From Caecitellus pseudoparvulus (taxonomy: Eukaryota; Protista; Bigyra: Bicosoecida): a stretch of DNA of 64,000 bases. Both the position numbers and the translations under genes were made by a program. Location: positions 310,001 through 374,000 of the forward strand of contig CBFFRQ010000042.1 of NCBI GenBank assembly GCA_965644315.1. Direction: 5' to 3'. Position 1 is the first letter of the stretch. The number at the start of each line of letters is the position of its first letter. Shown piece after piece: positions 3,105 through 54,115 of this stretch. The notes under the pieces are model-generated. The model saw nothing but the letters and a program-made list of their open reading frames with translations, made no database searches and was not told where the DNA came from.

Positions 3105-4113
<1,009 letters not shown>

Positions 4114-4353
4114 GCAGCCTGTCTGGCGGTCGCCAGATCGTCGCCTCCTGCCTCTGCGAGTGAATGCATCTTCCCTGCTTTCACAATCCAGTCCTGCAGG
4201 AGTGGCAGTGCGTCGTGCTGGTCACAGTTGACACCATGACGGCTTTCGACGCTCCCTGCCGTCGGTCCAGGTCAGGTCCAGGCACTTCGCAAGGCATAGG
4301 CGCGCACCTGCGGCCAGCGCACAGCCCTGCACTGGCAGGTGGCCACGGAAAGC

Positions 4354-6840: not shown

Positions 6841-6976
6841 GGAGATTGCGGGGGGTTGCTGGTGGCTCTGGAGGCGCAAGAGTGTCCAGGGCTCACAAGG
6901 CAGCGATGGGGCGCTTCGTCGGGCGAGCACGTACAATTGCTGCATTTTGTGTGTGCACCATATTCTGCGTGTGGGC

Positions 6977-9347
6977 TTAGTCTGACATTGAGTCGCAGAC
7001 AGCCGGACTGTCGCCTGCTTGGCTTCGGGGCGAACCCTCATCAGCCGTGACACGCTCGCCACTGCTGCACTGGACAGCCTGCTCTGGAGCACGGGGCAGG
7101 CTGAAAGCCTTGGCAGCCGCAGCCCCAGCCTTGACGTCCACCCAGAACAGTGCCGTGGCTGGGATGAGCAACATGGCCAGCACGTACAAGAAGGAGAGCC
7201 TGATGTTGCCCGACTGCACTGCGGCCGCAGCCACAGCTGGGCCGACAAAAGAAGAGCCCTTGTTCGTCAGCTCGAAGAGGGACATCCACGCTGACTCAAA
7301 GCCTTTGGGAATGAGCGTCACGAAGACGGCCCGTGAGTATCCTTGCGTGACGGCGGAGGCCACTCTGTGAAAGGGGAGGGAGGGCGTGGTCGTGTGTAGG
7401 ATGGGGCCTGGCCCGCTGCCGGCCCATGGGCTTCTCACCCGATGAGGGGGGCTGCGATGAATAATTCCCAGCCCTGGTGCAGGCCCGCTTCGTTGGTGGC
7501 CATGCCAACCAGGGCGTATGCCGGCACGAGAGTGACACAGAAGAGCGTCGCTTGCAGCACCACCTTTGGCGCGACGCCGAAGCGACGCGACGCCCACAGC
7601 GTGCCCATGTTGCCGAGGATGCCGAAGAGCGGGATGATGATGATGACTGCGGCGAGGCCCAAACTGCGCGGTATGCAGCCCCACGACACGAACGAGTTGG
7701 CGAAGAGCGCGCCGATGGCAATTTGCACGGACACCCCGTCGGACAGGAGGAACCAACAAACAAGGAAAGCAGTGGAAATGGGCAGCTGGAGCACCTGCTT
7801 TACCGTCTCCACAACTCCAGACACTGACAGGCTTAGAATGGAAGTGTTTGGCGGCATTGGCGCACCCTGCCGGTCGTTCAGTTGCGTGTAAACCCAACCT
7901 GTGACGGCCACCCACCACACGCCAGCCACGGCAATGGAGATGCGGTAGGCAAGGAGGGTGTCATCCAGGAATATAGTCAGCGGCAGCACGCAGAGGACAC
8001 AGAGCAGGCCTCCGGCGTAGCCACACGCAAAACCCCGGTTCGACAGGGAGTTGCTGGCGGCTTCCACGCTGTCTAACAAGTCTCCCACTGTGGGGGGGAC
8101 ACTCACGACAGCAGCTTCCAGCCCGTTCCCAGCCTCCACATCACTGGACGCCTGGACAGGCATGACAGGGACCATCTCGAGGCCGCCTTCGTCGGTGTCT
8201 TGCGTTGGCTCTTCCATGGGGTTGGCGGCGGCTGGCGTGACTTCCCCAGCGCCCACCTCCGCACAAGACTCCACAGACACCTCTTTTACAATGTGGGCAG
8301 ACAGAGGCAGAGTGAGTTCTTCCTGGCTTTCCACACCCGCCGCTCTCACGCCCTGTGCCAGCCGCTGGATGTGGGGCAAGCCGCGCACGAGTCCAGGCAA
8401 GAAAGCGTTCAGCAGCACACTGCTGAAGCCGAAGAGGACGTTGGAAAGGATGATGAGGGGGCCTGCCAACCAGTATGTGTCTGGGGTGACTGCCAGGAAG
8501 AGCACCGTGAACAACGCACCTGCGGCTGTGGTGGCCATAAACGCTGGCTTCTTGTGCCCGGCGTAGTCAGCCAGGCTTCCAAACAGCACAAACACTACGA
8601 GCTGCGCGGCGACAGAAAGGGAAGCAAACAGGGCCGCAAAGGCAGTTGCATCTAGCCCACCGGCAACTGTCAGCTGCACTGGCTCAGCTCCATCCGCGCT
8701 TCGGCAGCTAGGAACTGAGGAAGGCAAGCCTCGACACAGATCGCCGATGCAGGCTGGAGGGCGGCCATCCAGGCACTGGGCTGGCGGCGGGTCAACGTAA
8801 AAGTGGGCCACGTGAACATCATCAGCACCAAAGACAGAATGAATGAGGGTTTCGTTGCGTGTGACGTTGGGACAGCCCGCCTGTGCGGGTGCCAGGAGGT
8901 GCATGCACGCCAAGGCGGCGTCGCGGAAATTGAATGCAGAAACTCACGTCGGGGAAACCTGCTGCAAACAGGGCTGCGGTCTGCGTTGCGAGTGGTATAA
9001 AGGATCCAATCGCAACTTGATTGTAGGGAGAGTTGCCGAAATCCCCCATGTACCATGCAAAGACCTGCGCGCACAGAAGCGGCAGTGTGTGCAGACCAGC
9101 TGCGCAAGCAGGCGATTGTCGCCAGAGCCAGGCGGCACACTGTGCTTACTTCGCGGGCGCTGGAGGGTGCCTCTTGCAGCACATCGTCCACAATCGTCGA
9201 AGCAGATGCACTGGCATCAGAGCATGGCCTTTGCTGGCCCTCGCTGGCGGCCGTGGGTGCACCCCCGTCGGCCGCATCACCGTGCGAAGGTGTGGCTTGT
9301 GCAACCTCCTCCACTTCACCGTCGCTTGCAGCGGGGCTACCGGACAT
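6977..9347 (-). CDS. MFS transporter, Atg22/UMF1 family (vacuolar efflux-like), multi-exon
   Basis: GDFGNSPY (cf. YDWANS), FGSLADY, NAFLPGLV, SNRGFACGYAGG, WFLLSDGV, SRAVFVTLIPKGFESAWMSLFELTNKGSSFVGP; many hydrophobic helices. Exact 5' exon boundaries are less certain. Confidence 0.8.
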
Positions 9348-35744: not shown

Positions 35745-36383
35745 ATGTCATCGTTTGCATCTGAGTTGGCCAAGGCCTTGAACAGGCCCCACGGGCCTGT
35801 GAAGGCACTCATGTGGTTCACCATCGCCTTCGGCGGCAGCTATGTGTACATGGAGCACATCAAGCCGCTGCAGGATGCTGCAGCGTGGGAGCAGATGAAG
35901 AAGGACATCAAGACTTCTGTGCGTTTGCAGGGGGCTGCGTCGCTGGCTCCCTGCATTGCCACTGGGCATGCCCACACAAGAGTGGCACCTCTCCAACTTC
36001 CACATGCACAGGGCGACGGCTGGCTCCCGCACTACGAGGCGCGGAACCCAAATGACATTGCCACTGAGTACGAGCGCACGTACGGTGTGGAGCGCCAGCT
36101 CACCACGGACTTTACTTGGGAGCAATTGGAGGTGAGGTCGCCCGCAAGGCGCAGCTGTTTGCCCGTGGAGGACCTGCCCGCTTCCCCCCCCCCTTGCAGG
36201 GTGCGCCATCCAAGGACGGGAACGACCTGAGGTATGCCGTGGAAGGCAAGCGGTTGCAGGGTGAGTCCTACCGCCAGGCAAGCAGAGCTCGTGCTGCGCT
36301 CTCGACACAGTCGCTGCCTGGGTTGCATTCACAGCCGCTTTCTCAAGGTGAGGTCGGACAGTCGAGCTGCAATGCACACATGA
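35745..36383 (+). CDS. Small hypothetical single-pass membrane protein (introns 35919-36011, 36132-36199; 3' end uncertain)
   Basis: CACCATG start; TM ALMWFTIAFGGSYVYM; plausible GT-AG introns; codon style like neighbouring expressed genes. Confidence 0.5.
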
Positions 36384-36489
36384 ATGTCCATGCCACCACC
36401 TTGCGCATGCATACACGACAAACGGGGGAGGTCTTCAGCCTGTGCCGCCATGGGTGGGATCGTGGACGCACTCTAGTCCCTTGCTCGCC

Positions 36490-37170
36490 TCACGCCATGA
36501 GGGAAGATGCTGTGGAGGCCAGGGTGCCTAGAATGCCGGCGATGTCATCATCATTGAGGTCATTGAGGCTGGGCAAGACAGCCCGCGTCATGTCCACAGT
36601 CGTGGGGCGAAGGTTCATGAGGGATACCAGCTGCGGGGAGGAAGACATGGCTGCATCGTGCGCGAGGTGTCCAAGGCAAGCCATGGCAAGCTCGACACGC
36701 ACCTCAAAGTCTGAGAGCCTGCGCTCATGCGCACCCTCGGCATCGTGGAGGTCGAACACCAGTCCAGCCAGGGTCCTGCGAGGACAGCGGGGGCAGCACG
36801 CGGTGCTTCCCTTGAATTTCCGCACACACTGCAGAGCCGGCATGGCGCTGGCACGCACGGACGCAGTGCCTCGACGACGGCCTCCGCATCAGCGCCCTGA
36901 ATGCCACCAAACTTCTTGCAGAAACTGTGCGCCTTGGTGAAGGTCCTGTGGCATGGCGGAGGAGGTGGCGCGGCAGCTGGCCTGTTGGGCAAGACAAGCA
37001 TGTGCGCACCCGGACTGCTCTTTGCCGTCTGCGTGCTTGACGTGCGCATCAAGCACGATGGCTACCTCGGCATTGGACAAGAAGGTGGCGCCCTCCATGC
37101 CAGGCCCGAAGTTCCCCTGCTCTGTGTCCTCTTGGTCCGCCTCCATGAAGCGGGTGTCCACAGCCGCCAT
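36490..37170 (-). CDS. RPB4: RNA polymerase II subunit RPB4 (3 introns)
   Basis: FGPGMEGATFLSNAEVAIVL, TFTKAHSFCKKF, LSDFE-LVSLMNLRPTTVDMTRAVLPSL..DDDIAGIL (HRDC-like Rpb4 pattern). Confidence 0.82.
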
Positions 37171-37606
37171 GGCGCTCGCAGTGGCTGCCAGGTGGGTGCG
37201 CAAGCTGATGCTGCTGCAGGCAGAGAAAAGGGGGGAGCAGCTTCGTGTGGGTTGCCCGGCGCGGCCTGCAGCTACAGCCACTTGTCCCCCGCGCAGTGTC
37301 TGCAATGTGGCTAGGCGCGCACACTGTGCGAAGAGCACTCCATCCAGCCGTGCGTTCCCCGCGCACGGCGATGTGCCGCATCGTCAAAAACAAACTCACA
37401 CATTGGGTTTCTCTGGTTGACTATGCAGGCTTCCTGGCAATGCTCTGCCGAAATTCCCAGGAGCTTTGGCGTCGAGGCACCTGCCAACCCTGCATCCAGG
37501 AAGGCTGCCACTGCCAGCCACGTGCGCCTGTCGCGCGCAGCACGGCGCAGGCCTTCTCAGGCAGGAAGGCGCAGGGTTCCAGTTTTAGAGTGACAGAGAA
37601 GGCGCC

Positions 37607-40600
37607 ATGGCATCCCAGCGTGACCAGCAGCTCGCGGAGGTCATCGTGAGTGCACTTGCGAGGCGTGTTTGCACTGCACCACCTCGCATGCGACCTGGGC
37701 AGCTGCTGGGTCGATTCCTGGCGTCCCGTGTGGTATTCAGCTGCAACTGGTGTAGCTAAGTGTTCTGCTTGGTGATCTCGCTGGTGTTGTGCCGCGTGGG
37801 TGTGTCCAGGAGCGCGATGCCGACCGTCGAGGCAGCTGGCTGAGAGCAGGCCTGATTCCGCAAGCTGCAAGGAGAAAGCCCCTCCCCGCGGAAGCGCTAG
37901 TGGCGGCGCAGAGGGCTTGTGCAGCACTGGCGATGTTCTACAGCACACCACACACATCTCCTGCCCTGCCCCCTCTTGCCCAGTCGACGGAGGTGACTTA
38001 CCTGAACAACCTTGCTGTGTTTCGCGAGGTGCTGCTGTCTGAGCTGGCTGCCAAGACGGGCAAGGCGGTCTTCTCCAACATCGACGGGCAGCTTGGCACC
38101 ATCATTGAGGTGAACAGGGTCATCCTGAGCGCGCTGGAGGACGCAGCTGCCTCAGGCTGGACCACCAAGACAGTCGGCAGCATCTTCCTCTCCTACGCCC
38201 CCATGTTGAAGTGTTACAAGAACTACGTGGCAGGCTATGCCGAGGCGGACGCACTGGTGAAGGATGCCATGACTGCACGGGAGTTCACCAAGGTGCTGGA
38301 CGGCATCATGGCTGACCCCGCCAAACGTGCCCGGCTGCAGGGGCTGGACTTCACCGGCTTCCTCATCATGCCCATTCAGCGCATCCCCCGGTACGAGATG
38401 CTGCTGGGCTCCCTGGCTAAGAGCACAGGGGAGGACCACCCCGAACATGCAGAGCTGGTGCAAGCGTACGAGGCTGTGAAGGACATCAGCAACACGTTGA
38501 ACGGCGAGATCACCCTGCGGGAGAAGCAGGCGGCAGTCATCTCCCTCAACTCGTACCTGTTCAAGCCGCCTGCCCCAGGGGCTGCTGCGCCGACGCAGCC
38601 GGCGGGCATCGTCTCCCCTTCCAGGGTGTTCATCATGTCCTCCAGGTACTTCCTCCCACGGTCACTAAACTCAGTGGCGCCGCAGTGTGTGGAGAGCGGC
38701 GCGACGAGGTACCTGGCTGGGACAAGCCACGACCGCCGTCGCTTCAGCCGGGTGCTGGAGCCCTCCAGCAGTCGCGCCGGCTCACCCACTGCTGGTGTGC
38801 GGGTCATGCTGTATCTGTTCAATGACCTGCTGCTGGTCACGCAGCCTGCTGATGTAGGGGGGGTAGGGGCCAGCACTCGCTCCATTGGCAGCTCAGGCGG
38901 CGCAGAGGACTCCCCCGGCACGGCCGTGGTACTGGCCCGCATCCCCATCACGGCCAGCGTGGACGTGACGACGCTGCCAGAGCGGGGCATCCTTGCCTTG
39001 CGCAGCCTTTCGGGCGCCGTCACGGGGCTCCTGCTCAGTGCAGTGGCAGACCAAGGCGACCCTGCCTCCAAAGTGCGCAAGTGGTCCGACAGCATCTCTG
39101 CGGCCGTCACTAGTTTGAAAGAGACCGCACAACGCAAAGCCGCCATCAGCCAGAGGCTGAACTTGGGTCCCCCACCTGCCGCTGCCGCAGCGGCCAGCGG
39201 CAACGGCACCGCCTTCTCAGCGCCGGGAGACCTGCACCTGCCAACTGCTGTTGCGGCGGCGGGGGGGCGCATGGTCCACTTCCACTCCCCTGCCGCCCTG
39301 GCTGCAGCTGGTGCGGGGGACGGCGTCATCAGCTTGGAGAGCATCCTGTCCCCCAGCGCTGTCGCAGAGAAGCGCGCGTCCCTGCTGAATTCCATCCTGC
39401 AAGGCACCGCCGGCACGCCCTTTGACGAGGCCAGCGCCAAAGTCATCACGCGTCGCGGCAGTGAGCGCTTGGTGTCGGCTCAAATGGCCATGTCCATCAT
39501 GGAGTCTCCCCTGCAGAAGCGAGGCAAGAGCGCCTTCGGCGGCTGGCGCAGCCGCTGGTTCGTGCTCCAGGTGCACCCCTTGCGAGACCCAGTGCCGGGC
39601 CTGACGCCAAACCTTGACATTGCAAAGGCGGCGCGCCTTGCTGCTGCCGCTGACGCGTCTGGGCGGCCCATGTCTGTGCCTTTTTCCTACCCGCTGCCGG
39701 AAGTGACAGGCTCCCTGCACTACTATGAGAGCCGCAAGGCCTTCGACTCGGGGGCGCAGCCCAAAGGCACCATCGACCTGGCCCAGGTGGAAGGCGTCGT
39801 CTGGTACGGAGGCTCCTCAAGCGGGGACGGCAAGCGCTTTGACGTCAAGACCAGCGGCCAGCGAGACTATGAGATCAGAGCGACGTCCGTGCCAGGGTCC
39901 ACCTCTGCGGAAGCAGTGGAAGCCCTCGCCAAGAACTGGGTTGCCATGCTCGTCTGCGTGGAGGAGCTGAAGGCCAAGGTGGCAGACCTGCACGACGAGC
40001 TGCAGCGGCGCAAGACCGAGTTGACCCTGTTCAAGCAGGACCCCCCCGCACAGGACGGCAAGGACGAGGATGCGGCAGATGCCCCCCCAGCTGAAGAGGC
40101 ATCCACGCATGCTCCGAAGCTGGGAGCTCAAAAGCGCCCCCCTCCGCCGGCTGGCGCGCGCAAAGAGCCACCTCCTGCGCTGCCAGGGCGTGCTGCAACG
40201 CCGCCCTTGGTTGGCTCAGCCATCCCGGAGGCAGAAGAGGAAGATGTGGAGTCGGAGGGCGCCCCCTCCCCGCTCCCACGGGGCGCCACGCCGCCCGTCT
40301 CTACCTCGCCCCCGGCAAGTGGCGCGCCAGAACCCTCTGCAGATGCACCTCGCCCTGCTCACAAAAAGTCCATTGCTATCCCAGCTGCAAAGCCTGCACC
40401 GCCTCAAGCGCGGCTCCCTGACACTGCACCCGATGCCGCCGAGGGTGCTGCTCCTCAGGATGCGTCTGCCAAGCCGCCTGTGCCAGCGGCTGGCAAGGCT
40501 CCCCGTGCCACCAGCTCTGGGCGTTCGCGACCTCCGCCTCCAGCCGCCGGCAAGCGAGCCGGCTCAGCGCAGAGGAAGCCCCCACCTCCCGGGAAAACTG

Positions 40601-43600
40601 CCTCCGGCTCACGAGCAGCCAGCCCGACAGACTCAGACGGATCTGACGGCAAGCGTGGCTCCGCGCCCACGCCAGCTTCCTCCTCCACTTCTCGCGCGCC
40701 CTCCCCCCCCCTGCCGGCCAGCCAGCAACCCAAGGCAGGACCGCCAGTCACCACCTCCAAGGCTGGTCCGCCCCCAGGTGCCCGGCGACACACCGGCAAA
40801 CCCGCACAACCGCCGGGGTTGCCTGCAGCACTGCAACAACCGCAGCGGAGGGCGACAGAGCCCCCAGCATCTGCCAAAGCGGCGCAGCCGAAGCCTGACC
40901 CTGCAGATGAGGCAGAGTCAGAAGTGCAGACTCCGCCACAAGCTGCACCGGGGCAGGAGCCTGCCCTGGAGGCGGTGCAGGAGGATGGGGAGGACAGCGA
41001 GGAGCAGGACGCAGGCCCCAGCCCCTTGCCCGGAACCAAGGCAGCGCCCGGTTTGCCTAGTGGGGCGACCAAGGCCCGCAAGCAATTCCGCATCACGCCC
41101 ATGAACCCGCACCTGTCAGGGCAGGTGCGGCACAAAAAGGCAGCCCGGTACTCCAAGCCCGCCATGCAGCCGCTGGAGGGGGCAGCCAGCGTCATCGCGA
41201 AGTTCCGACAGGCGGAGAAGAAGAACACTGGCCCCCGCAACCAGTGGAACCAGCACATGTGGTCCAAGTCCCAAGAGGAAATCACCAACCTGGCGCCCCG
41301 CATCCAGTCCAAGGGGCGGCGATGGCGCAAGCCTGGCTCTACCCAGCCCAGCGCTGAGGAGGAGGCGGCGGAGGAGGGTGAGGACTCCCCACTGCAGGCG
41401 GCGCCTGCACCTAAGGGTGACGGAGCCGCTGCTGCTATCAAGGCCAGCGTGCCCCCGTCCCCGTCCCCTTCCATGAAAAGCGCGACGTCGCCCGCCCCGT
41501 CCATCGGGAAGGAGGGCGCGATCTCGGGTCGGGTCGTGCGCACGCTTCCCCGCCAGGAGCTGCACAACACCGTCCTGCAGGGAGACGCTGGTACATTTGC
41601 CACTGCCTCCACCGCATCTGCCGCCCAAGCCACCGCGCTCAGCGGCAGCCACCTCGTGTACGCCGGAGAGCCAATGCCGAAGTCTGTGGTGGTGGGAGCT
41701 GAGCGACGTGCCTTGGAGCACTCCCCCGCGACAGCCCTTGCCCTGCTGCAGGAGTACGCCCGGAACGGGCTGTCTTCCCGGGCTCTGGCCTTCTTCAGCG
41801 ACATGCGGCACCACCTGGGGGTCATGGGGCTCGCGAGTGGCGTGGCAGGCGGGGGGGCCTCCACTGCCCTGCATCCAGCACAACTGGCCAGGGCCTATGC
41901 ACTGGTCATTGCGGCCTTCGGCAAGGCGGGGCGCGTCGCAGGCGCCCAGACTTGGTTCGCCAAGGGCTTGGACGACGTCAACGCCGCCGTGGCTGCCTGG
42001 TGGCGGGCTGCCCCAGACAAGGCCAGCATCAACCCGGAGAACACTCGGTCAGTGTGCGGGCTGATATTGCACACCGCCATGCTGCGGGCCTTTGCCAGGG
42101 CGGGCATGGTGTCCCACGCGCGCAACGTCGTGAAGTGCCTCATCGCGCGGCGCCTGCCTGTGCTGCCTCACCATGTGCACTGTGTCGTGGTCGCAGCGGG
42201 CGTCTCGGGCGACCACTTGGCTGTCGGGGAGGAGCTGCTGAGGTGGATGCGGCGAGGACACGTGCCCCTGGCAGCCACAGTGGCCGTCTTCATCCAAGCC
42301 CTGGGAGCGGCAGGCAAGCCCCACAGCGCAGCGACGTTGTTCGACGCGCTCACCGCAGGCGCCGACGCGCAGTTCGTGACCAGCCTCGTGAATACTGCCA
42401 CCCTCAGTGCGGAGGGCGGCGACGCTGGCCCCGGCGCAGATGCGGCCAAATGTCCGCTGTCCACGGAGTCTGGCCTCACCCGGGCGCAGATGTCCCAGAG
42501 CCGACCCGTGAAACGGGAACTGGAGGCCGTGCGCCTCATCCTCACCTCTGCGGAGGACACGCTCCGAGCCCGCAGGGAGGCGGAGGAGACGCCCAACCGG
42601 AGCGACAGCTGCGCTGCGCTGGCAGGCGGGGATGGGGGCGTGTCGCTGCTGCCGAGCCGGCCCTCCCCCTCCCCTGCACCCATCCACATGCCGCTGCTGT
42701 CAGCTTTGTTGCAGGGCCAGGGAGGCGCTGGGGAGGGCAGCCAGGCCTCCCGCCTGCACCTTTCCCGGGTGGTGGCAGAGATGACCTCTCGCCTGAACAG
42801 CATCAACGGCATCGGCAACGACGACTTGGCGGCCATCCTGCAGGCACAGGCCACGGTGCCCGGCGACTCCGCACGGGGCGTGCGTGCGACCAAGCCTGCT
42901 GCTGACCAGGGCCAGGGTGCTGGCACAACGCGAGGAGCGGTCACTCTCACAGGACTCTTCCCCTGTGTAGCGGGGAAGCGTGCAGGCGCTGGCTTCGTGG
43001 CTGCTGACACCTCCACGTATGCAGCAGCCATCGCGGCCATGGGCAGGTGTGGGCTGCCACACCTGTCTGACCGCGTCCTGGACCACATGAAGCTTGCTGA
43101 GCGCGAGAGCTGCAGGCGCCAGAACCTGATGGCCGAGGCTGCCGCCTCCCTTGGCCTGGCCACCCAACCATACGCCTGCACGCACCTGCCGCCATCTGGT
43201 GTGCTGTCCAGCAGCGTCTTTGATGCAGTGGACGATGGGCAGCTGCTGGACACGGTGCTGGAGGCAGCCAAGCACCCGCGTGTGGACGCCGCAGCAGCAG
43301 TTGAGGGCTCTGTGGCCTCCCTGCGACGCCTGTCCGCACCCCTGCCCCCTGTGCGGGCCAACGAGGTGGCGTACACCGCCCTGGCCTTCGCTCACGCCGC
43401 CGCCAACAACGTGAACGGCGTGCACCAAGCCGTGTCCTCAGCGGAGAGCGCGGGCTTGGCCAGCACACCATGCATGGCGGCGGCCCTCGTCACGGTGTAC
43501 GGGAGCAAGGGAGACCTGGACTCCGCAAGGCGCCTGTACCACCAGGCCCTGGCCGCTCAACGCGCCGCCCAGGACAATGTTGAAGCCGGGAAGGCGGAGA

Positions 43601-46600
43601 GCTGTGACGTCGTGCTCACAGGTAGCGTCCCAGCCCTGCACCAAGCGTACCTGCACGTTTTGGCCCAAGCTGGCGCCGTACCTGAGGCTCGCACGGTCGC
43701 CCTGTCCCTGCTGAGGCCCCACGACTACGTCAAGAGCATTGCGGCTGATGCTGCAAGCAGCACACCCACCAAGAACCCTACAGCGTCCCCCCTCCGCCGA
43801 TCCGTGCGGGCTGTGCTCGCAGCTGAGGAGAAGTCTGCAGCCGCGCTGGGTGTTGGCGAGAGTTCCAGCGCAGCAGCAGAGGGGAGCGAGGAGGACGTCA
43901 CGCTTGGCTGCCTCAGCACGGCCCTCTTCAATGCTCTGCTCCTGTGCTATGGAGCAGATGGGGCCAGTGACAAGCTGGCGGACCTGGCCGACACCATGGC
44001 AGGCGCCGACGTGACCCCTTCTCCTGAGAGCTTCGGAACCTTGCTGTCCACGCTGGCGGCTCACGACATGGCCGAGGCAGGGGTGCAGGCGGCTGAAGTG
44101 CTGGCTGCCAGCACCGCCCTCTCGCCCCACGCGCAAGTTGCGCTGGACGTGCAGGCCCTGTTGGCCCAGGAAGGCATCGACGCGCCCCCGCCTGCAGCAT
44201 CCCTGGGCCCAGCTGTGCAACAGCACGTCGCTGGCCGGCGCTTCGATCCCTTGGCCAAGGCGGCCCTGGTGGCTGTCAAGGAGAGCGCTGCCAAGGCGGC
44301 CCGCGCCGCCGCCTCTCTGAGCAAGGATGGCGCCAGTGGGGCGGGCACAGGCGCCCTGCAGGTGCCCTTCTCCATGACCCCCGCCGTGACGCCGGCCCTG
44401 GCCAACGTCTTGCGGGGCCGATCAGCTGTCCTCCCAGGGGAAGCGTCGCGGTGCAGCGGCGCGGCGGGCTGCTTGATGACTCACATGTATATCAAGGCCG
44501 GGCAGCTGGCTGCTGCCAGGCTGACACTGGCGGGGGTGGAGCGGGGCATCGCTGTGCCTCGTTCAGACATCCAGGGTTGCTACGACGCCCTCGTTGCGGC
44601 CTTTGCCGCCGAGGGCGCCTCGGCTGCCGTGGATGAGTGCCTGGCTGCCATGGAGGAGTCTGGGCAGATGGCAGGGGAGACGGAGCAGGGCGCGTGCCTG
44701 CAGGGCAACGACGCCCCAGCTCCCTCGCCCAGCGGGACAGACGTGCACTCCCTGGTGGCAGACCCCTGCTCCTGCACCGACAGCGGGCGTGACGACGTGG
44801 GAGCCGATGCTGCCGATGCTGGGGAAGCCCTGGGAAAGCGGGGCATGAGCCGCCTTGTGCGTTGTGCCGCCAACGCCAGCGTCATGGAGGGCACCTTCCG
44901 CAAACTCATGTCCTCCTACGGCCTGCAGGGCAAGGTGCAGCGAGCCCGGGCCACGTTCGAGGGCATTCAGCGTGTCCGCGCCAACAAGAAGCTGACGGAG
45001 GACATGGCAGCAGCTGCCCTGCCTGGTGGGGAGGACGACGCAGCCCAAGAGGTCATGCGCGGTGCCCTGAGCAAGTGGGCTGCAGACGCCACAAGGGCGG
45101 GTATGGTGGCGGAGGACGAGGCGGCGGAAGCGCTGAATGGCCAGGAGGGGCTGGCAGCGCTCATGGACAGCATGGTGGCCGTGGCTGGGGCCGGCACGGC
45201 GGCACGCAGCACCAGCCGCCAGCTGTGCGGCACCGTCTCCGCAGATGAGGTTCAGCACGGCCCAGAAGGCGGGGATGACACCCAGCATGTCTCCATGTAC
45301 ACCCCAGACACCACCAGCGACGCAGCGGACGCCTCAGCGGCGCCTCGAGCTGGCATGGATGCCCTGGTGGCAGCATCAGCCCCCGCAGCGCTGAACGTCA
45401 CTGCAGCGGCAGTGACGACCGGCTTCAGCGCAGAAGTGGAGGCGTCTGCCAAGGCCATGGCAAAGAAGCGACGTGCGTCCAAGGCAGCCAAGCAAGCGGC
45501 CGCTGCCGAGGCAGGTACAGACGACGCGTTGGCGGCTTCCTCGTCAGATGAGGAAGAGGATGCCACCGGCACATCCCTGGGTGCAGAGGCCTTCAACGTG
45601 CTCATCGACGCCTACGGCGAGGGCTGCCGTCTAGACCTGGCGGTGGGGACCCTGTCGGAGATGCTGCAGGACGGCACCGTGCCCAACGCAGGCACGCTCA
45701 TCGCGCTCATCAACGGCTTTTCCCTGTCTGGCCGTGGGGCAGAGGTGCTGGGCGTCATGGACCAGGTGCACAGCCTGCTCAGCACGCGGTCACACCTGTC
45801 CGAAGCCTCCATCAACAAGCTGCTCATGGACCACGGCGTCGTGGCAGCACGCTTGGCTGCCCTCGGCACGTCAGGCCGCCCTGACCTTGTGCATGCTGCT
45901 TGGCTCAGCTACTGCGAGTTCAAGTTGGGCTTCGAGCCCTCTGGCCCCAAGTCAGACGGCGTGAACAACGTTGAGCGGCTGCTGCCTGTCTTCCCCGTGT
46001 ACTCCCAGCTGCCTGGCAGCGTCACGTCCGACACCCATCGGGCACTGGCGGAGGCGTACTTGTCTGCGCAGGCCATGGCCCTCAGTCGTTGCGGAGGCAA
46101 CGCGCACTATGCGACGGCTTGTGTGCGGTCTGCCGCAGGGCTGGTGCGGGGACAGGAGCAAGCCGAAGCAGAGGCATCGTCCGGGGGCGACCCGCTGCGC
46201 GCTGCGCTGGCGTCGCTGCCCGTGCCCACGCAGCTGGACGAGTGCGTGGCGCTGATGCAAGACACGGCAGCTGCCTTGGCGGAGCTGGGGCACCCCATGT
46301 CCATCACGGCGCTGACGTCCCTGGCCCTGGCCTACCGCATGGCGGGCATGTCTGATGCCGGCAGGCAGCTGCTCATGCAGGCCGTGGGGCTGGTGGCACA
46401 AGCCACGTCCAGGGGCGCCTCGGCAATCAGGCACTACCACGTGCCCACGGGGACCCCTACCTCCTCGGCAGGGTGGGGGTACGGCATGGACTGCATTCAC
46501 ATGGATGGTCATGAGGACACGACCATGGTGGCTGTGGAGGAGGGAGCCACAGCGGCGCCCGTCCCAGGGACGCTGGTGCCGTCCGACGTGCGTCTGGATC

Positions 46601-49600
46601 CCGAGATCCTGGCCGCCCTCATCACCGCCCTGGGTGCCAACGGCATGACAGGGGAGGTGCGTGCGGTGCTGGAGAGCGTGTCTCGGTCTGCAGGTGTCGT
46701 GGACACGGCCGCGGCCGTGAAGCACGTCCGCAGCGCCATCGGCCTTGAGGCGGCCACCGCCCAGGACGAGGGCAGCGGCGCCTCCCAGGCCGTCGTGTCC
46801 GCTTGGAACGACTTGACAGATGACCTGCGCCACATGCTGTACGCGGCGTTCGGCATGCGGCGCGACGTGGCCACTGCTGACCGCCTGTGGCGTGCAGGCG
46901 GCTACTCCGCCCGGGTGTACACGAAGGCTATCACGTCCCGGCGGGGTGATGCGGGGGGCGACGGCATGGTATCTGCCGACCACAAAGGCATCGTCATGAT
47001 GGCAGCCGGCGGCGAGCCGGAGGACAGCCCTGCCCGCAGCACCCGCAGCGGCAAGGCGCCGCCCTCCCCCCCTCGGCGTCGACGCCACCGACAGAGCATT
47101 GCCCTCACCCCCATGAATGCCTTGGCGCCCAAGGTCAGCCTGGCCAGCATGCCCATCGGGCGCGGGTCGGGGACGGCGGAGGAGCCCGAGGCGCCCACCC
47201 CTGCCGGCGGCTTGCCCAGCGAGGATGCTGCTGCCGGGGATTGGATTGAGACGGCGGTGTTGGCCCTCGTCCGCAATGCCCAGCACAACTTGCTCACACA
47301 CATGGCCACGGTGAAGTCAGCCGAGGTGCAGGGCGACACGCAGTCCGCTGCGGCGCGCATGATGGCGGGGGAGGGCGTGCTGGGCGTCGTGTTCGACCCC
47401 ACCTTGAACACGGCCCCTGCTTCTCCGCGTGGAGGGGGGGACTTCTCCTACGCCTCGGCGAGAGACGCCACTGCTGCCTCCTTCAAGACCCCTGGCCAGG
47501 CGCCTGGGCCCCCCTCACGGCGCCCAGGCCCCCCTGCTGGGCCTCCATCCCGACGCAAGAAGACCGCGTCCGCTGCTGTGCGCCGCAGGCCCAGCATGCT
47601 CATGAGCGCTGTGGCCCTGCAAGGCGCCTCTGGCAGTGCGGCAGGCTTCAACGCCGCGGCGCTGATGGAGGAGACGCCATCCACCCCGGAACCCAGCCCC
47701 TACGCGCTGCCCTCCCTCGCGGAGGAAGGGCCTTCCGACGGGGACAGCGACGGTGCACAGGCACCCAGCGAGGAAGAGGCGGCCCAGCGCGCCCTGCTGC
47801 AGCGCGTGAGTCAGGTGACCAGTGCGCCCAACGCAGGGGGGGGCTCTGGCATGGACGAGGCGGGTGCGCTGTTCTCCCCTCTGGCTGCGGCGCTGAAAGT
47901 GGCAGCCCTGTGCGCAGAAGGCAAGGTGGATGCGGCGCTGGGCGTGATGCTGCCGTGGTGGCGCCTGCGTCTGGAGCGCCGCTCCACCTCCCTGGCTGCG
48001 CGCCGCCGCTCCAGCCGGCTGATGATGGGCAGCCAGGGGCGGGACGCGGGGGCGCCCCCTCCCCGCCGGGCGCCCGCCTCTGGCGCCATGCCAGACGACG
48101 ATTCAGTGCCGGGTGTGGGTGTGGTGTACTGGAGCGACAGCGACGACGACGAGGGAGGGGACGAGGAGGCGGCTGGCGTGCGGGGTGTGCGCAAGGTCAA
48201 GCGGCGCCTGCCTTTCCGTCCCCTGCCTGAGACAGTGTCCCACCTCCTGCACGCCATCGCCCGCACGATGCGGGAGCGCATGGGCACGCTGGAGGCCCAG
48301 GCCAAGCGCCGGGCCGCCACTGCAGGCACCACCTCCAAGCGCGGCAGTGTCAGTGTGGGGGAGCCCATGGCCCCGGCAGCTTCGCTCAGTGTGCACTCAG
48401 ACCCCGTCCTGGCCCTGTACGAAGACGTCATGTGGCGTCTCGTGCGGGCCGTCACGGTGGGCGGCGGACTCATGCTGTCCGACACCGACCACGCCGCCAT
48501 TCTGGAGGTCGTGGCCCTGCGCGGCCGCGTAAAGGAAGCCTGCGATCGCATGGTGACGCAGGCCCGTGCTGACGGCACCGCCCCCCTGCGCACCATGCGC
48601 CTCTCGCACTTGGCCGCCTATGCCGCCAGCCACAACGACGCCGCCTCCGTGGCTGCAGGCGCCGCCAGCGTGGGCCTGCCCCAGGCAGTCGCAGGCGCCA
48701 GCATCACCGCCTTCAACGCGGTGCTGGCGGGGTTGGCGGGGTCTCCCGCGCTCACCCTCAAGGCGGCCGAGTTCGTGGCCATGCGCATGCGGCAGTGGTA
48801 CGTTCCGCCCGACATGTCCACGGCATCCGCTGTGGAGGCCATGTCTCAGCGCCTCAAGGTGGACCTGCACCCACTCTTCAACACGCGCTCGCCGCGGCAG
48901 CTGCACATGCAGTCCCAGCGTGACCCCTGGGCGCGTGGGGCAGACGTGGAGGCCCCCTCCCGCCCCAACCAGCCTTCCCTGGCAGCGGCACTGTTCTTCA
49001 AGCTGCCAGGTCGTCCTGGCAGCGGCCTGACGTCGGTCACCACGGCTGTCGGCAGCGTCGTGGGGCGGTGGCGTGGCGCCACCTTGGCCCGGCGAGTGGC
49101 GCTGCTGCAGTCTGCGGTGGCCAAGGCCGTGCACACGTTCATGTTCAGCGTGGGGGGGGTCGTGGTGGGCGGCATGCTGGCTGGCGCCAGCCCCCTCTCC
49201 ATCGAAGTGCACGCTGGCATGCTGCCGCCGAGTCTGGCCAGCCTGCTGCGCGGGACGCTGGCCAGTGTGCCGCCTGTGTCCCTGCCAGGCGCCGCGCCTG
49301 TGCGGGAGGGAGCAGCGGAGGACCCCTGGTCCGCATCCCCCGACGCCGCTGCTCCGCCAACCGGCCGGCGCAGGGGGTACACCGTGCAGCGCCCGGGGCG
49401 CAAGGGTGCAGAAGAGAGCCGGGAACGGGCTCGGACTCTGTACCCCGCCGCAGACATTGTGCCGCTCGGCGGCATGGGGCAGGGCATGTGGAGCAGCACG
49501 ACGGCGGAGTTGGTGGCAGGGCAGGCCGACCTGCTGGATGCCTCCTCCTCTGTCGGCGGCGTGTACTCCGACGCAGAGGACGTGGACGCCAGTGACGCGA

Positions 49601-52600
49601 GCAAGTCTGACGGAGAAGTCAATGAGCACATCAGGGCGCTGACCCTGGGCAGCACGCTGGCTGACGCGGCCGCCAGGCGGAAACTGGATGCCCGGTTCAT
49701 CCCGCCACCCCCTCCCCGTCGCAAGGTGCGGCGTGTGGACGAGGAGAAGGCCCGTGCCGTGGAGGCCGCCAGAGCAGCCGTCTTCTCTTCCTCCCCCGAA
49801 TTCGGCTTCTTCACGGCTGACATGGCTGGGCGCTCTGCTGCACGCCGCGAGGCGGGGTCGGGCACTGTGCCCAGCCTGGAAGACATTCAGGAGTCAGCAG
49901 TCGCCTCCACAGCCCTCTTTGACAACGCGTACGACCGGGAGCTGGCGGAAAAGGCCAAGGCCAAGCAGACTGCCGCCGCCACGACGTACGATTTTGTCGC
50001 CGCTGCAGGGCTCAAGGCCGCGTCACCGCCGGCTGAGGGCCTGGACACGACGGTATTCAACCGGACGCCATCCCCAAAGAAGCTGTCCTCAGACCCCATG
50101 TCCCTCTCCCACAGCCTGGCGTGGAAGGGCATGCAGTCCCGCGTAGACCACGCACTGGCAGGGCGGGCTGTGGGCCTGTCCCCTGAGAAGGACCCCCCTC
50201 AGCAGTTGCTGGAAGCGGCGCCGGCACACTCCGAGGCGTACTCTGCACTGGCAACGGATGCCCGCCCAGCCCACCCTGGTGTTGGCCCGGGGGAGGCGCT
50301 CCCAGACCGGGTGCAGAGGGAGGTGCTGTACCAGCGCCCAGGCGGGGAGGCAGTCATCAAGGTTGCGTCCCCTGCCAAGGGTGGCCACACAGTCGCCAGC
50401 TCCACCTCCCCAGGGCACTCCCCGGGTGTGGACCTGGCCCACGACCCCACCACCCAGGCAGAGGGCGAGCTGGCCCGTACCTCCTCGGCCACATCCCCTT
50501 CACGCAAGGTGGCGGGCTTGGCCGGCGCACACGACGCCCAGCAGGACCTCCTCTCGTTCGCGGCAGGCGGCGCCAAGGAGGCTTCGGAGGCAGGCGCCCC
50601 CGTGCCCTCCGCCCTGGAGGCGTACCTGGCCGACCCCTCCTTCACCGTCACCCGTGACGACGTTCTGACGGTGCGGGCGGAGCTGGTGTCCCTGTCTGCG
50701 GAGTTGGCCTCCACGGTGGCCACCATGATGCGCTCCGAGGCCAGCCTCAATGCGACACAGGCACAGGGCGCCCAGGCAGATTCCTACGCGCGCGCCGTCA
50801 CAGGCCTGGGCCTGCGTGACGTTGGCACGGCAGCCCTGTCGGAAGCCATGGCCCTGCGCAGCGACACAGCCTTGACAGAGGCGGTGGCTGCCGTGGCCAG
50901 CGGTGCCTCCCCCAGCACAGACATCGTCCCGGCGCACCTGGCCACCGCGCAGCCCTCAGCGGCTGACCTGGTCGTGCTGTCCTCCACACACCCTGCGGCG
51001 ACCTTGCCGCCTGTGACGGCCACCGAGCTCACGCAGCGCGTGAACTGGGGTCGCCTGGTGAAGCCTTTCTCGGGCGCCGGCATCATGACGGAGAGCGGCA
51101 AGCGGGACGTGGCACGCCGTCGTGTTGCCACGCTGCGGGCCGCCCACGCCCGCCTGGAGCGAGAGGAGGGCGAGCTGGCCATGCGCCTGGCCGCGACGAC
51201 GCCCCACGCCCGGGCGGCGCGGGAGCTCCTGGCAGGGTACCAGGACGCCGTGAAGGAGCTGAACGGCCGGGAGCGCGCCATGCGGAGCCAGGTGGCTCGA
51301 GACGAAGCTGCCTGCGATGCCCTCGCTTCCGGCCCCGGTCGGGACCGTGCCACACTGCGAGCATGGGCAGAGGGCAAGCCGGGTGTGGGCGCCTTGCACC
51401 CCGAAAGCAGCATCCTGGGGCAGACGGGGCAGGTGCTGCGCTCTGCACGCACGTCCGCGGCTGCCGCCTTCTCGCGGCAGCTGGACGGCATGGTGGCCAA
51501 CGTGGCGTTGCTGGAGCAGGTGGAAGCGGACACTGCGGAGCGCGTGGCTGCCCAGCGCAAGCGGGTGGACGCCCTGGTGGCTGCCTCCCTGAACTTGGAA
51601 GAGGACATCGCCGCCCTGAAGGAGGAGGAGGCCGGCTTGGCGGCTGAGATTGCAGAGTTGGAGGAGCGCTTTGAGGAGGCGCTGGCCACCAATGACGCCG
51701 TTGCAGACCAGCTGCACCAGACGGGCATCAAGGCGAAGGAGGTGCTGGCACACACGCGCGTGGATGCGGCGACTGCCCGTGAGCACGGCATCGAGGTGGC
51801 CATGCGAGAGGCCCGTGTGCGTGGCGCACGCACCGCCGACGCTGAGGGCAGAGCCGCTGTGGAAGCTGCCACGAATGACTGGGCGGAGCGCACGGCAGCA
51901 CACGCGCACTCTGTGGCGGAGAAACTCAAGGCTGTGCGGGCGCGGGTGAGTGAGGAGATGTCGGGACACCTGCAGCCGCTGCTGAAGGAGGCAGAGGCTG
52001 AGGCCCGCTCTGCCGCCGGCGAGCGCGCCGCGCTGGAGGAGCAGCTGACTGCCATGGAAGAGCGCCTGTCCTTCCTGTCCAGCGAGACGGGGGCACTGAC
52101 CAAGCACACAGACACACTGAGGGGGGTGCAGGACAGCATCCTCAGCGGGGAGCGCCTGGCGCCGGAGGGGCTGCGGCAGCAGTTGGGGGAGCTGGCCGTG
52201 CAGCCCTTCCAGCCACAGCACGAGGGCGACGAGGACCAGCGCAGTGTCGCCCTGGACCTCATGCAGTCCCTGCGCATCCCGGCCGTGGACATGACGGCGT
52301 TCGTGGAGGAGGCGGTGGAGGTGTCTCAAGCCCAGGCTTGTGCCCCCGATGCCGTGGAAGCCATCTTCAAGCTGTACGCAGAGGAGGGCCAGACGCGGCA
52401 GGAAGCCCACAAGGCACGCAAGGCTGCGGCGGCCACCGCCGAGGCTGGTGATCTGGCTGTGGCCTCCTCCCCTCTCCGCCGGCCCTCCCCCAGCTCCAGC
52501 CCCGGCAGCTCCACAGCGGCGCAGCTCAAGGACATCTATGCGCCGCCTGTGTCACCGGATGCGGGCCCAGGTAGGTACGAGTCTGCCCTGGCGGGCCTGC

Positions 52601-53961
52601 ACGATGTGGCAGCGGCGCAGGAGCGCCTCCTGGACGCAGCCGAGGCGGAGGGGGTGGTGCGCAGCCCCGACGGGCAGGCCGGTGCCCTCGCCGCCCTGGC
52701 AGACACTGCCAGCTCTGTAGGCTCAGGGTCGGAGTTCAGCCAGGGCGGGGGTGCGGGCACTGCCACCTTCCCGCGCGGCGGCGATGGCCAGCGCACGGGC
52801 AGGCTCACAGGCGCCTACACCATGGCGCTCCTGCGCAGCGCAGGGCTGAGCGCGGCAGAGGCCGCCTCCCTGGCAGTGGCGCCCGACACCTCAGAGGCCA
52901 TTGCTGCGGGAGACAAGGAGCGCGGCGCAGGCACACAGGCTGGCTCCTTTGCCAGGCGTGTCTCCTTCACGCCGGCCCACTCCCGCACACGCCGGGCCTC
53001 CAGCATGACTGCTGGCTCCGCTCGCAGCAGCAGGTCGCGGGGAAGCTCGGCCGCTCCTGCGCCTGCCCCCGCCCCTGCCCCTGCTAGCAAGTGGGCCCGC
53101 AACACGGCAAAGAAGCAGCCGGCGCCGACCCCCCGTGCCGACGCTGCTGCAAAGCTGCTGCGGCGTGCATCTCACGGCATCCTGCCTCAGATGGGAGCTG
53201 TGCGGCACACACCAGACACCACCCGGCGCCGTATCGTGGGCGGTGCCGGCAAGGCAGGCGGTGCCTCCAACATGACCCTGACGACCAGTCCCACCCACGG
53301 TGGCGATGGCCAGCGAGTGGAGGTGCAATCCTCCGTCGCCGGCTCTCTTAGCCGCGACCTAGCGCCCACAGCCGGGAGGGCGGGCCAGCGCACCAAATCG
53401 GTCATGCCACCCAGTGTCACACGCGCCATGCTGACCAAGAGCGCTGCCGCGGCTGAGGTCATGCGCGCTGCCTTGGAGGCCCAGGAGCGGGCCGGGGACT
53501 ACGTGGGGCGGGAGGAGGAGGCCGCCGCCCCCGCCTCCACCACCAAGCTAGGCAGGAAGCCCGGTCGAGGGCAGGCTGGCGCCCGAGGCACCGTGCAGAG
53601 CGCCGCGGCCTTCAGCCCCCTGCCCACCTCCCAGCGGCGGGGCAGCTACTGGGGCTCCAGCTCCTATTTCAAGGTGCACGGGGCCAGTGCGACGCCTGCA
53701 GCCTTGGCTGGCATCGAGGAGGGCGCAGGGGTGAAGGGTGTGCAGGCGGTGCCTCGCCTAAACAAGGCGCTGCGGCGGCAGGAAGCCAACCGCCGCGCCG
53801 CGGAGCAGGCCTCCAGTGTGGCGACTGGGCAGACGTACGGTGGCGAGAGCCGCGGCCAGGACTTCATCGACCCCACTGCCTCCGGGCGCCGGGGCAGCTA
53901 CTTCGGCACGTACTCTGGGCGCGGAGGGGGGGCTGCACCCAGACGGGGCTTGCGCAAGTGA
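37607..53961 (+). CDS. Giant (~5,340 aa) RhoGEF(DH)-PH-PH / Pro-rich / PPR-repeat / coiled-coil protein; exon 1 37607-37645, exon 2 37984-53961
   Basis: Splicing gives LAEVI-STEVTYL (DH start); FLIMPIQRIPRYEMLL; PH LYLFNDLLLV; PH LQKRGKSAFGGWRSRWFVL..LHYYES..PKGTIDL; at least 12 PPR-like motifs. Confidence 0.85.
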
Positions 53962-54115
53962 GCACGTCGCAGGCTGCCGTTTCCCGCCAATGCACTGATT
54001 GCACGTGTGTGAAGGGGCGGTGGGGTGTGCCCGCGACGTGGCCACCCTGCGCCTGTGTACGAAACATGCATGCATTGGCACACGACAGGTGCACGTGGGT
54101 GGAGGGAGCCCCCGC

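Follow-up and report, generated by a model that had tools for sequence, protein, structure and literature searches.

A giant predicted protein of Caecitellus pseudoparvulus combining a Dbl-family RhoGEF head with dispersed PPR motifs

Gene model and continuity of the open frame

The window analyzed here is a stretch of 64,000 nucleotides (nt) from the bicosoecid Caecitellus pseudoparvulus (contig CBFFRQ010000042.1, positions 310,001 to 374,000), to which all coordinates below refer. Its forward strand holds, at 37607-53961, what is read from sequence as a single conserved gene of two exons with a product of approximately 5338 residues. The predicted protein joins an N-terminal Dbl-homology (DH) domain, typical of RhoGEF-type guanine nucleotide exchange factors (GEFs), to a long region with pentatricopeptide repeat (PPR) motifs, a coiled coil, and a low-complexity tail. 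The parts of the gene model are the following:

37607..37645, forward strand: exon 1, an ATG plus 12 codons, with a homologous 13-codon exon in the relative locus L001 (9331-9369)
37646..37983, forward strand: phase-0 intron of 338 nt, GTGAGT...CAG, kept in position in L001 (9370-9615)
37984..53961, forward strand: exon 2, open over 15,978 nt, first codons S-T-E-V-T-Y-L
53989..53994, forward strand: AATGCA, located 28 nt downstream of the stop codon, a candidate poly(A) signal proposed from the position of this hexamer near the ends of open reading frames (ORFs)

The open frame runs without a stop from a GTG at 37789 to 53961 (5390 codons), and by our estimate the odds of a random frame of that length at 69% GC are ~e^-110. 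The GC content of the region is 65-71%, and several antisense ORFs of 400-500 residues represent the usual by-product of such a composition. The start at 37607, as given in the first-pass annotation, is borne out by the succession of ATG, 12 codons, and GTGAGT, with an acceptor CAG ending at 37983. This arrangement is shared with L001, where a 13-codon exon with a GTACGT donor is followed by a CAG acceptor right before T-T-E-V-S-Y-L; nine of the 13 residues of exon 1 are identical between both loci. Exon 1 is below the usable length for any search, and the two exons were searched unjoined, with the frame of exon 2 alone. Since the Pfam RhoGEF match opens at 37984 at profile position 7, exon 1 plausibly supplies the missing start (positions 1-6) of DH helix 1. 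Residue numbers of the ORF (aa) are counted from the in-frame ATG at 37936, so that residue n starts at nt 37936 + 3(n-1); this ATG falls inside the intron, and the true protein number is the ORF number minus three.

Upstream of the gene, a small coding region on the minus strand (36493-37383), conserved in L001 at 8247-8840, separates the giant gene from the run of genes that precedes it. This region leaves no space for more upstream exons, and implies that the divergent promoter region is short (37384-37606). The DH region of L001 (9331-10127, equivalent to 37607-38380 of the window) holds three short introns of 246, 62, and 63 nt, of which the window gene retains the first alone. Introns of the DH region have been lost or gained between two lineages whose proteins are ~50% identical.

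A word search of proteins retrieved P0001, which is 99% identical to the window protein, together with P0002 (5341 aa) and P0003 (5285 aa). The latter two are ~50% identical to the window protein over its full length and ~83% identical to one another, and P0002 carries precomputed Pfam hits for both RhoGEF and PPR. In L001, the DH domain is complete, and the genes upstream are collinear with the window at 23.9-37.4 kb, so that the giant genes of both loci are positional orthologues. The comparison of strains, based on a DNA run with the P0001 haplotype (37946-42906), gave 32 listed differences, of which 24 are synonymous and 25 lie at third codon positions (binomial p 3e-7). Over the stretch that reaches from the weakly conserved linker to the first PPR array (aa 761-1254), seven strain differences are synonymous versus two non-synonymous.

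Contigs from a small marine metatranscriptome (run X1) are 95-99% identical to the window at 38332-38852, 39416-39745, 40080-40357, 41071-41575, 41861-42122, and 42825-43004. They flank the junction between the DH and PPR parts, fall inside the linker, and display no joints. As short Logan contigs, these matches reveal presence rather than a continuous transcript, and the library may contain DNA. Another X1 contig, found at the loose end at 38362 and derived from a relative of the P0002/P0003 type, joins QLRGLGMHDF straight to LIMPIQ, without the 63-nt intron of the relative. This is a weak sign of expression and splicing of the orthologue, and an intron-less relative could give it too.

The hexamer AATGCA has no sense-strand copy at 36377-53988, and consequently none inside the ORF, an absence that is not significant alone (~1 copy is expected at this GC content) and counts as consistency only. 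Across the window, it is often found from 0 to ~150 nt downstream of the ends of same-strand ORFs, for example at 4163, 25980, 35583, and 53989 on the forward strand, and at 6941, 36324, and 55750 on the reverse strand. Its total count (34 versus a shuffled expectation of 28) is not above expectation. The placement of the hexamer fits a role as a poly(A) signal in this genome.

The alternative to a single gene is that the DH-PH-PH and PPR parts are separate products, divided by an unseen intron, internal promoter, or poly(A) site at 40000-41700. The weak conservation of the linker (25-32% identity) and the fact that the junction is spanned by no single read or contig speak for it. However, the frame of the linker is open in three lineages, its strain differences are largely synonymous, the RNA-library contigs that lie within it (40080-40357 and 41071-41575) have no joints, the ORF is free of sense-strand AATGCA, and the middle of the linker holds a conserved block. 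Two genes are therefore considered very improbable. As to a hidden boundary in this interval, proposed in the first-pass annotation as the point on which its one-gene model could fail, the evidence favors that model, which agrees with the open frame, the two full-length orthologues, the third-position strain differences, and the linker contigs alike.

Exchange-factor head and proline-rich linker

The N-terminal part of the open frame carries the following features:

37984..38502, forward strand: Dbl-homology (RhoGEF) domain, identified with Pfam PF00621, phmmer against the PDB, and Foldseek
38605..39156, forward strand: probable DH-associated PH domain (PH1), proposed from its motif, position, and low-confidence strands, with no hidden Markov model (HMM) hit
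39493..40035, forward strand: second PH domain (PH2), with a loop insert of ~45 aa and, in strands 1-2, a basic K...RxR motif
40060..41013, forward strand: Pro-rich linker of low hydrophobicity, 25-32% identical to the orthologues
41101..41319, forward strand: basic block in the linker, 73% identical to the orthologues, matched by no Pfam family

From the first codon of exon 2 onward, the DH domain matches PF00621 with an E-value of 7.7e-31 and 108.1 bits (cut-off 27.6) over profile positions 7-180 of 180, as expected from the earlier claim of an N-terminal DH domain. Among PDB sequences searched with phmmer, the DH domain of an Entamoeba FYVE-GEF (FP10) ranks first (E 2e-13), followed by those of P-Rex1 and intersectin. 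In the alignment with solved DH domains, the motifs that contact the GTPase can be recognized, namely the CR1 Glu in TExxY, QRIPRYxxLL in CR3, and the Asn of helix 9, and they are kept in the orthologues. Foldseek with an AlphaFold model of the head returned 69 DH structures at E<=1e-3, down to 4e-6, the DH part having a predicted local distance difference test (pLDDT) of 55-72. By its score above the threshold and its contact motifs, the protein classifies as a Dbl-family RhoGEF with predicted exchange activity.

A Rac/Rho-type GTPase gene split by introns is found in the same window at ~3300-4113 on the forward strand, with a switch-1 TNAFPxEYxPTVFDNY and a C-terminal CIIV CaaX box. This Rac-like gene represents a candidate substrate class for the GEF.

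PH1 is a probable PH domain, suggested by an L-F-N-D-x-L-L-V-type strand motif after the DH domain (read from the alignment) and by low-confidence strands and a C-terminal helix in the AlphaFold2 model. Several Foldseek DH-PH alignments run over 310-375 columns with a high root-mean-square deviation. By sequence, neither Pfam nor the family profile against the PDB matched this region. The AlphaFold2 runs used three-sequence alignments, and the models are usable for secondary structure alone.

PH2 is likely a PH domain, with weak support from two sequence methods. Pfam PH matches its first strands alone with 18.4 bits (E 0.0031), under the cut-off of 25.1. The family profile, run against the PDB, scores highest with PH domains (SBF1 and ORP11; E 0.0056), in two pieces split by the insert, with ACAP1 and DAPP1 scoring lower. 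The alignment presents the textbook PH pattern G-x-L-x-K-[KR]-G...W-[KR]-x-R-W-F-V-L and a conserved Trp in the last helix. A K...RxR motif in strands 1-2 of PH domains is a pattern associated with phosphoinositide binding. Of the two PH domains proposed in the first-pass annotation, the second has thus gained profile support at these E-values, whereas the first is indicated by motif and position alone, with no HMM hit.

No N-terminal targeting presequence was seen by eye, as had been noted from the sequence before: in both species, DH helix 1 forms the very start of the protein.

The Pro-rich character ascribed to the linker (40060-41013) is confirmed by four PPPP runs and by 13 PxxP motifs in aa 721-1250, where ~4 are expected. 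A T-P-M-N motif that follows basic residues is found at two places of the protein (41095-41106 and 47107-47118), both within conserved blocks; in the orthologues, the first of them is TPIN.

In a further reading of the protein, the DH-PH head is no longer catalytic and the product acts mainly as a coiled-coil or helical element of the cytoskeleton or of organelle tethering. In favor of it, non-GEF sequence makes up more than 85% of the length, the divergence of PH1 puts it out of reach of HMMs, and a second giant PH- and PPR-bearing protein of the genome (described below) has no detectable DH domain. Against this stand the DH score of 108 bits with intact conserved motifs, and the retention of the DH domain in the orthologue across three introns, so that a vestigial GEF appears improbable.

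Dispersed PPR motifs, coiled coil, and tail

The remaining part of the protein comprises the following features:

41704..42345, forward strand: first PPR-like array, ~5-6 motifs with loop inserts (Pfam PPR 41 bits, hhalign 87-96%, custom HMM)
43006-43092, 43366-43557, 43918-44088, 44581-44664, and 44893-44961, forward strand: dispersed PPR islands (hhalign 65-98%)
43918-44088, forward strand: the island among these that matches designer PPRs of the PDB (E 6e-10)
45589..45774, forward strand: best PPR pair (PPR_2 31.1 and PPR 27.5 bits; PDB E 2e-21; hhalign 99.5%)
45775..48834, forward strand: most conserved part (65-78% identity), all-alpha by prediction and interrupted by long disordered inserts, with weak PPR-like signal at 46231-46392, 46609-46689, 47899-47949, and 48496-48834
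51049..52155, forward strand: coiled-coil region, charged and helical, with its core at 51403-51975 and weak hits to Pfam coiled-coil families
52213..53961, forward strand: tail of ~580 aa rich in Ala, Gly, Ser, and Arg, which ends in the stop codon

Several profile methods agree that the repeats score as PPR. PF01535 (PPR) reaches 50.8 bits (cut-off 25), and PF13041 (PPR_2) 30.2 bits, within 43006..44961, and 31.1 bits (cut-off 30), so the doubt raised in the first-pass annotation, that HMMs might fail to recognize these repeats, is dispelled. When Pfam was run on pieces of 250 aa, PPR was scored in three pieces only. Family profiles against the PDB matched designer PPRs at aa 2550-2611 (E 2e-21) and aa ~1991-2051 (E 6e-10), and a plant mitoribosomal PPR more weakly at aa 1375-1468. 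A custom two-motif PPR HMM, built from 47 unrelated PPR proteins found by profile search, detected eight islands at aa 1269-2613, and none in 20 locally shuffled copies.

The three-species alignment was also compared in sliding windows with this PPR-pair profile using hhalign, with column-shuffled windows as the control (maximum 14.3). Scores above the control were obtained solely at aa 1201-3660, besides two marginal windows in the coiled coil. The strong islands (probability 65-99.5%) lie at aa 1257-1470, 1691-1719, 1811-1874, 1995-2051, 2216-2243, 2320-2342, and 2552-2613, and the moderate or weak ones at aa 2766-2819, 2892-2918, 3322-3338, and 3521-3633. Altogether, the PPR signal spans 41704-48834 (~2400 aa) as ~11 islands of one to six motifs, separated by 30-400 residues; the seven strong islands all end by 45774, and the signal at 45774-48834 is weak.

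A long uninterrupted tandem array was not found, and a continuous superhelix is not shown by structure prediction (mean pLDDT of the model 36). According to our reading of the code residues, the two best motifs carry N5/N35 and N5/S35 and the others I, G, or A at position 5, so that approximately half of the motifs do not have the usual code residue at this position. Given the scattered islands, the missing code residues, and the weak distal signal, target prediction with the PPR code is not feasible. The PPR motifs are, by their profile matches, genuine but dispersed and degenerate, and do not form a canonical tandem array. The ~7 kb of PPR-like motifs proposed initially hold in their extent (41704-48834 versus 41730-48840), but not as an array for sequence-specific RNA binding, given the ~11 islands and the weak signal past 45774.

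The central 1160 aa (aa 2540-3700) were used as a profile (A1) in an exhaustive HMMER search of 1.84 billion representatives, which detected no full-length relatives outside the family; 97 unrelated PPR proteins match just the PPR pair at 45589-45774. The AlphaFold2 model of the same residues is all-alpha with long disordered gaps. Foldseek placed PPR structures at the top for this model, at an E-value of 1.7e-3 and a template modeling score (TM) below 0.15, and this match was not counted as evidence. In a protein language model search (Atlas), aa 1250-2360 fell close to PPR families, and the recognition value was under the reliability mark.

These data bear on the proposal that the PPR islands fold together, with their inserts looped out, as an RNA-binding surface, through which cytosolic mRNAs would be tethered or regulated at membrane sites of Rho activation, in the manner of RGNEF/p190RhoGEF but by means of PPR motifs. 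The motifs above the Pfam cut-offs that match RNA-bound designer PPR structures, the canonical code pairs of the two best motifs (Asn at position 5 and Asn or Ser at the last position, in our reading), the proximity of aa 1250-2360 to PPR families in the language model, the Arg/Gly/Ser-rich tail, and the RGNEF precedent (PMC4159981) would all be in line with it. On the other hand, there is no contiguous array of at least eight motifs, approximately half of the motifs are non-canonical at position 5 (I, G, or A), the signal is weak past 45774, and the Atlas recognition value stays under its reliability mark. Such a link between Rho signaling and RNA is regarded as rather unlikely.

Downstream of the PPR region, the long coiled coil described initially is recovered at 51049-52155, where the Pro-free stretch of 191 aa at 51403-51975 exhibits the highest heptad (3.5-residue) periodicity of the protein, a pattern by which this region is predicted to be a coiled coil. 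The tail holds two conserved RRGSYFG-type motifs (RRGS-[YF]-[WF]-G) at ~53632-53670 and 53884-53919, both kept in the two orthologues, whose RRxS resembles a basophilic-kinase site. Neither Pfam nor Atlas matched the tail, and the Atlas search of the C-terminal third gave no usable match.

Relatives, proposed function, and significance

This architecture was found by protein searches in just three clusters, all of them metagenomic proteins, and a literature search for both domain names in one protein returned nothing relevant within the library covered, which agrees with the earlier statement that no such protein had been described. The closest known comparison for the head is offered by DH-PH-PH RhoGEFs of the FARP1/2 type and by the nearest solved DH domains, those of Entamoeba FP10, P-Rex1, and intersectin, with which the giant protein shares a motif-bearing DH domain, a PH-like region, and a likely second PH domain. 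Unlike these proteins, the giant has no FERM, FYVE, SH3, or DEP/PDZ domain, its PH1 is unrecognized by HMMs, and ~4600 extra residues are without counterpart. With the P-class PPR proteins (PPR10, designer, and mitoribosomal PPRs), it shares 35-residue helical-hairpin motifs above the Pfam thresholds; however, it has no presequence, its motifs are arranged in islands, many of them without code residues, and they are located inside a signaling protein. DENND4-type Rab GEFs carry an annotated PPR motif, and they resemble the giant as cytosolic exchange factors with PPR-type motifs, while they differ in having a DENN instead of a DH domain, in acting on another GTPase family, and in holding far fewer repeats.

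A combination of RhoGEF and RNA binding is, in general, not without precedent. RGNEF/p190RhoGEF (ARHGEF28), a mammalian Dbl GEF with a non-PPR RNA-binding domain, has been reviewed as the sole family member with both activities (PMC4159981). The first-pass claim of novelty stands for the DH-PH-PPR architecture, and the idea that a RhoGEF joined to RNA binding would be unprecedented is to be toned down. Both proteins are Dbl GEFs; RGNEF binds RNA through its non-PPR domain, whereas the giant may bind RNA. Homology between them beyond DH-PH was neither seen nor sought.

Searches of the own genome covered an assembly of 30.6 Mb in 215 contigs. The family profiles A1 and A3 match the gene itself alone, and A2 otherwise recovers only the DH domains of other RhoGEFs. 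A scan with PF13041 gave matches in at least five open frames, which include one canonical tandem array (C68) and two giants. The second giant ORF (G000:C69:130102-142389, loci L011 and L013) is intron-less and encodes 4096 aa, in which a PH-like domain is followed by a long Pro-rich linker and by dispersed PPR motifs (PPR_2 47 bits). Its PH domain resembles PH2 in the C-terminal half (blastp E 6e-6; hhalign E 3e-5), and the remainder is not alignable, a full-family HMM giving noise. The two giants thus share a PH-like domain, a Pro-rich linker, and dispersed PPR motifs, and differ in that the second has no DH domain detectable by Pfam or PDB search; its orthologue P0103 likewise matches PPR families alone, with no DH. 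A two-member DH-PH-PPR family in this genome was considered and dropped, since no DH domain could be detected in the second giant. A partial NCBI protein 99% identical to the second giant is labelled Symbiodinium sp. KB8, and the assembly of that strain may be contaminated by C. pseudoparvulus or a near relative.

The reading that we favor, as somewhat the likelier account of these features, is that of a cytosolic, membrane-recruited Dbl-family GEF built on a giant helical, dimerizing scaffold, in which the PPR motifs serve mainly as scaffold. The N-terminal DH-PH pair would load GTP onto a Rho/Rac GTPase, PH2 with its K...RxR motif would bring the protein to phosphoinositide membranes, and the Pro-rich linker may offer docking sites of the SH3 or profilin type. 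The degenerate-PPR helical region and the coiled coil would then constitute a dimerizing platform by which the GEF is positioned or gated on a large structure of the cell, with the PPR motifs acting chiefly as a helical-repeat scaffold and any RNA contact being secondary. Such a scaffold is consistent with the predicted all-alpha fold and its disordered inserts, with the coiled coil, and with a central region that has no relatives outside the family.

Several points weigh against this interpretation. The RNA support consists of short contigs from one small metatranscriptome with possible carry-over of DNA, from which a single transcript is not demonstrable. The AlphaFold2 models are poor (mean pLDDT 38 for the DH-PH-PH head and 36 for aa 2540-3700), and the folds of PH1 and of the helical region are tentative. 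Moreover, the retention of PPR motifs at 65-78% identity could mean that they serve a specific ligand, for instance RNA, instead of a plain scaffold.

PPR motifs have been regarded nearly always as RNA-binding modules of organelles, and Dbl GEFs as signaling enzymes of membranes. Here, one gene under selection unites a Dbl GEF and PPR motifs, has no presequence, and is retained by at least two protist lineages. The protein is best described as a Dbl GEF with an unprecedented accessory region, a combination that seems undescribed. It is a doubtful prospect, although a far-reaching one, that the PPR islands form a real RNA-binding surface, and that the giant, perhaps together with the DH-less giant of C69, defines a cytosolic, membrane-anchored class of PPR proteins. 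If true, specific mRNAs of a heterotrophic protist would be captured or locally translated in a way coupled to Rho-GTPase activation, and PPR function would extend beyond organelles. The practical value of the finding is limited by the narrow family, the degenerate repeats, and the predicted nature of the function. The gene nevertheless provides a concrete case for cytosolic PPR repeats, whether they tether RNA or simply form a helical scaffold, and extends the picture of lineage-specific giant signaling proteins in little-studied marine stramenopile-like protists.

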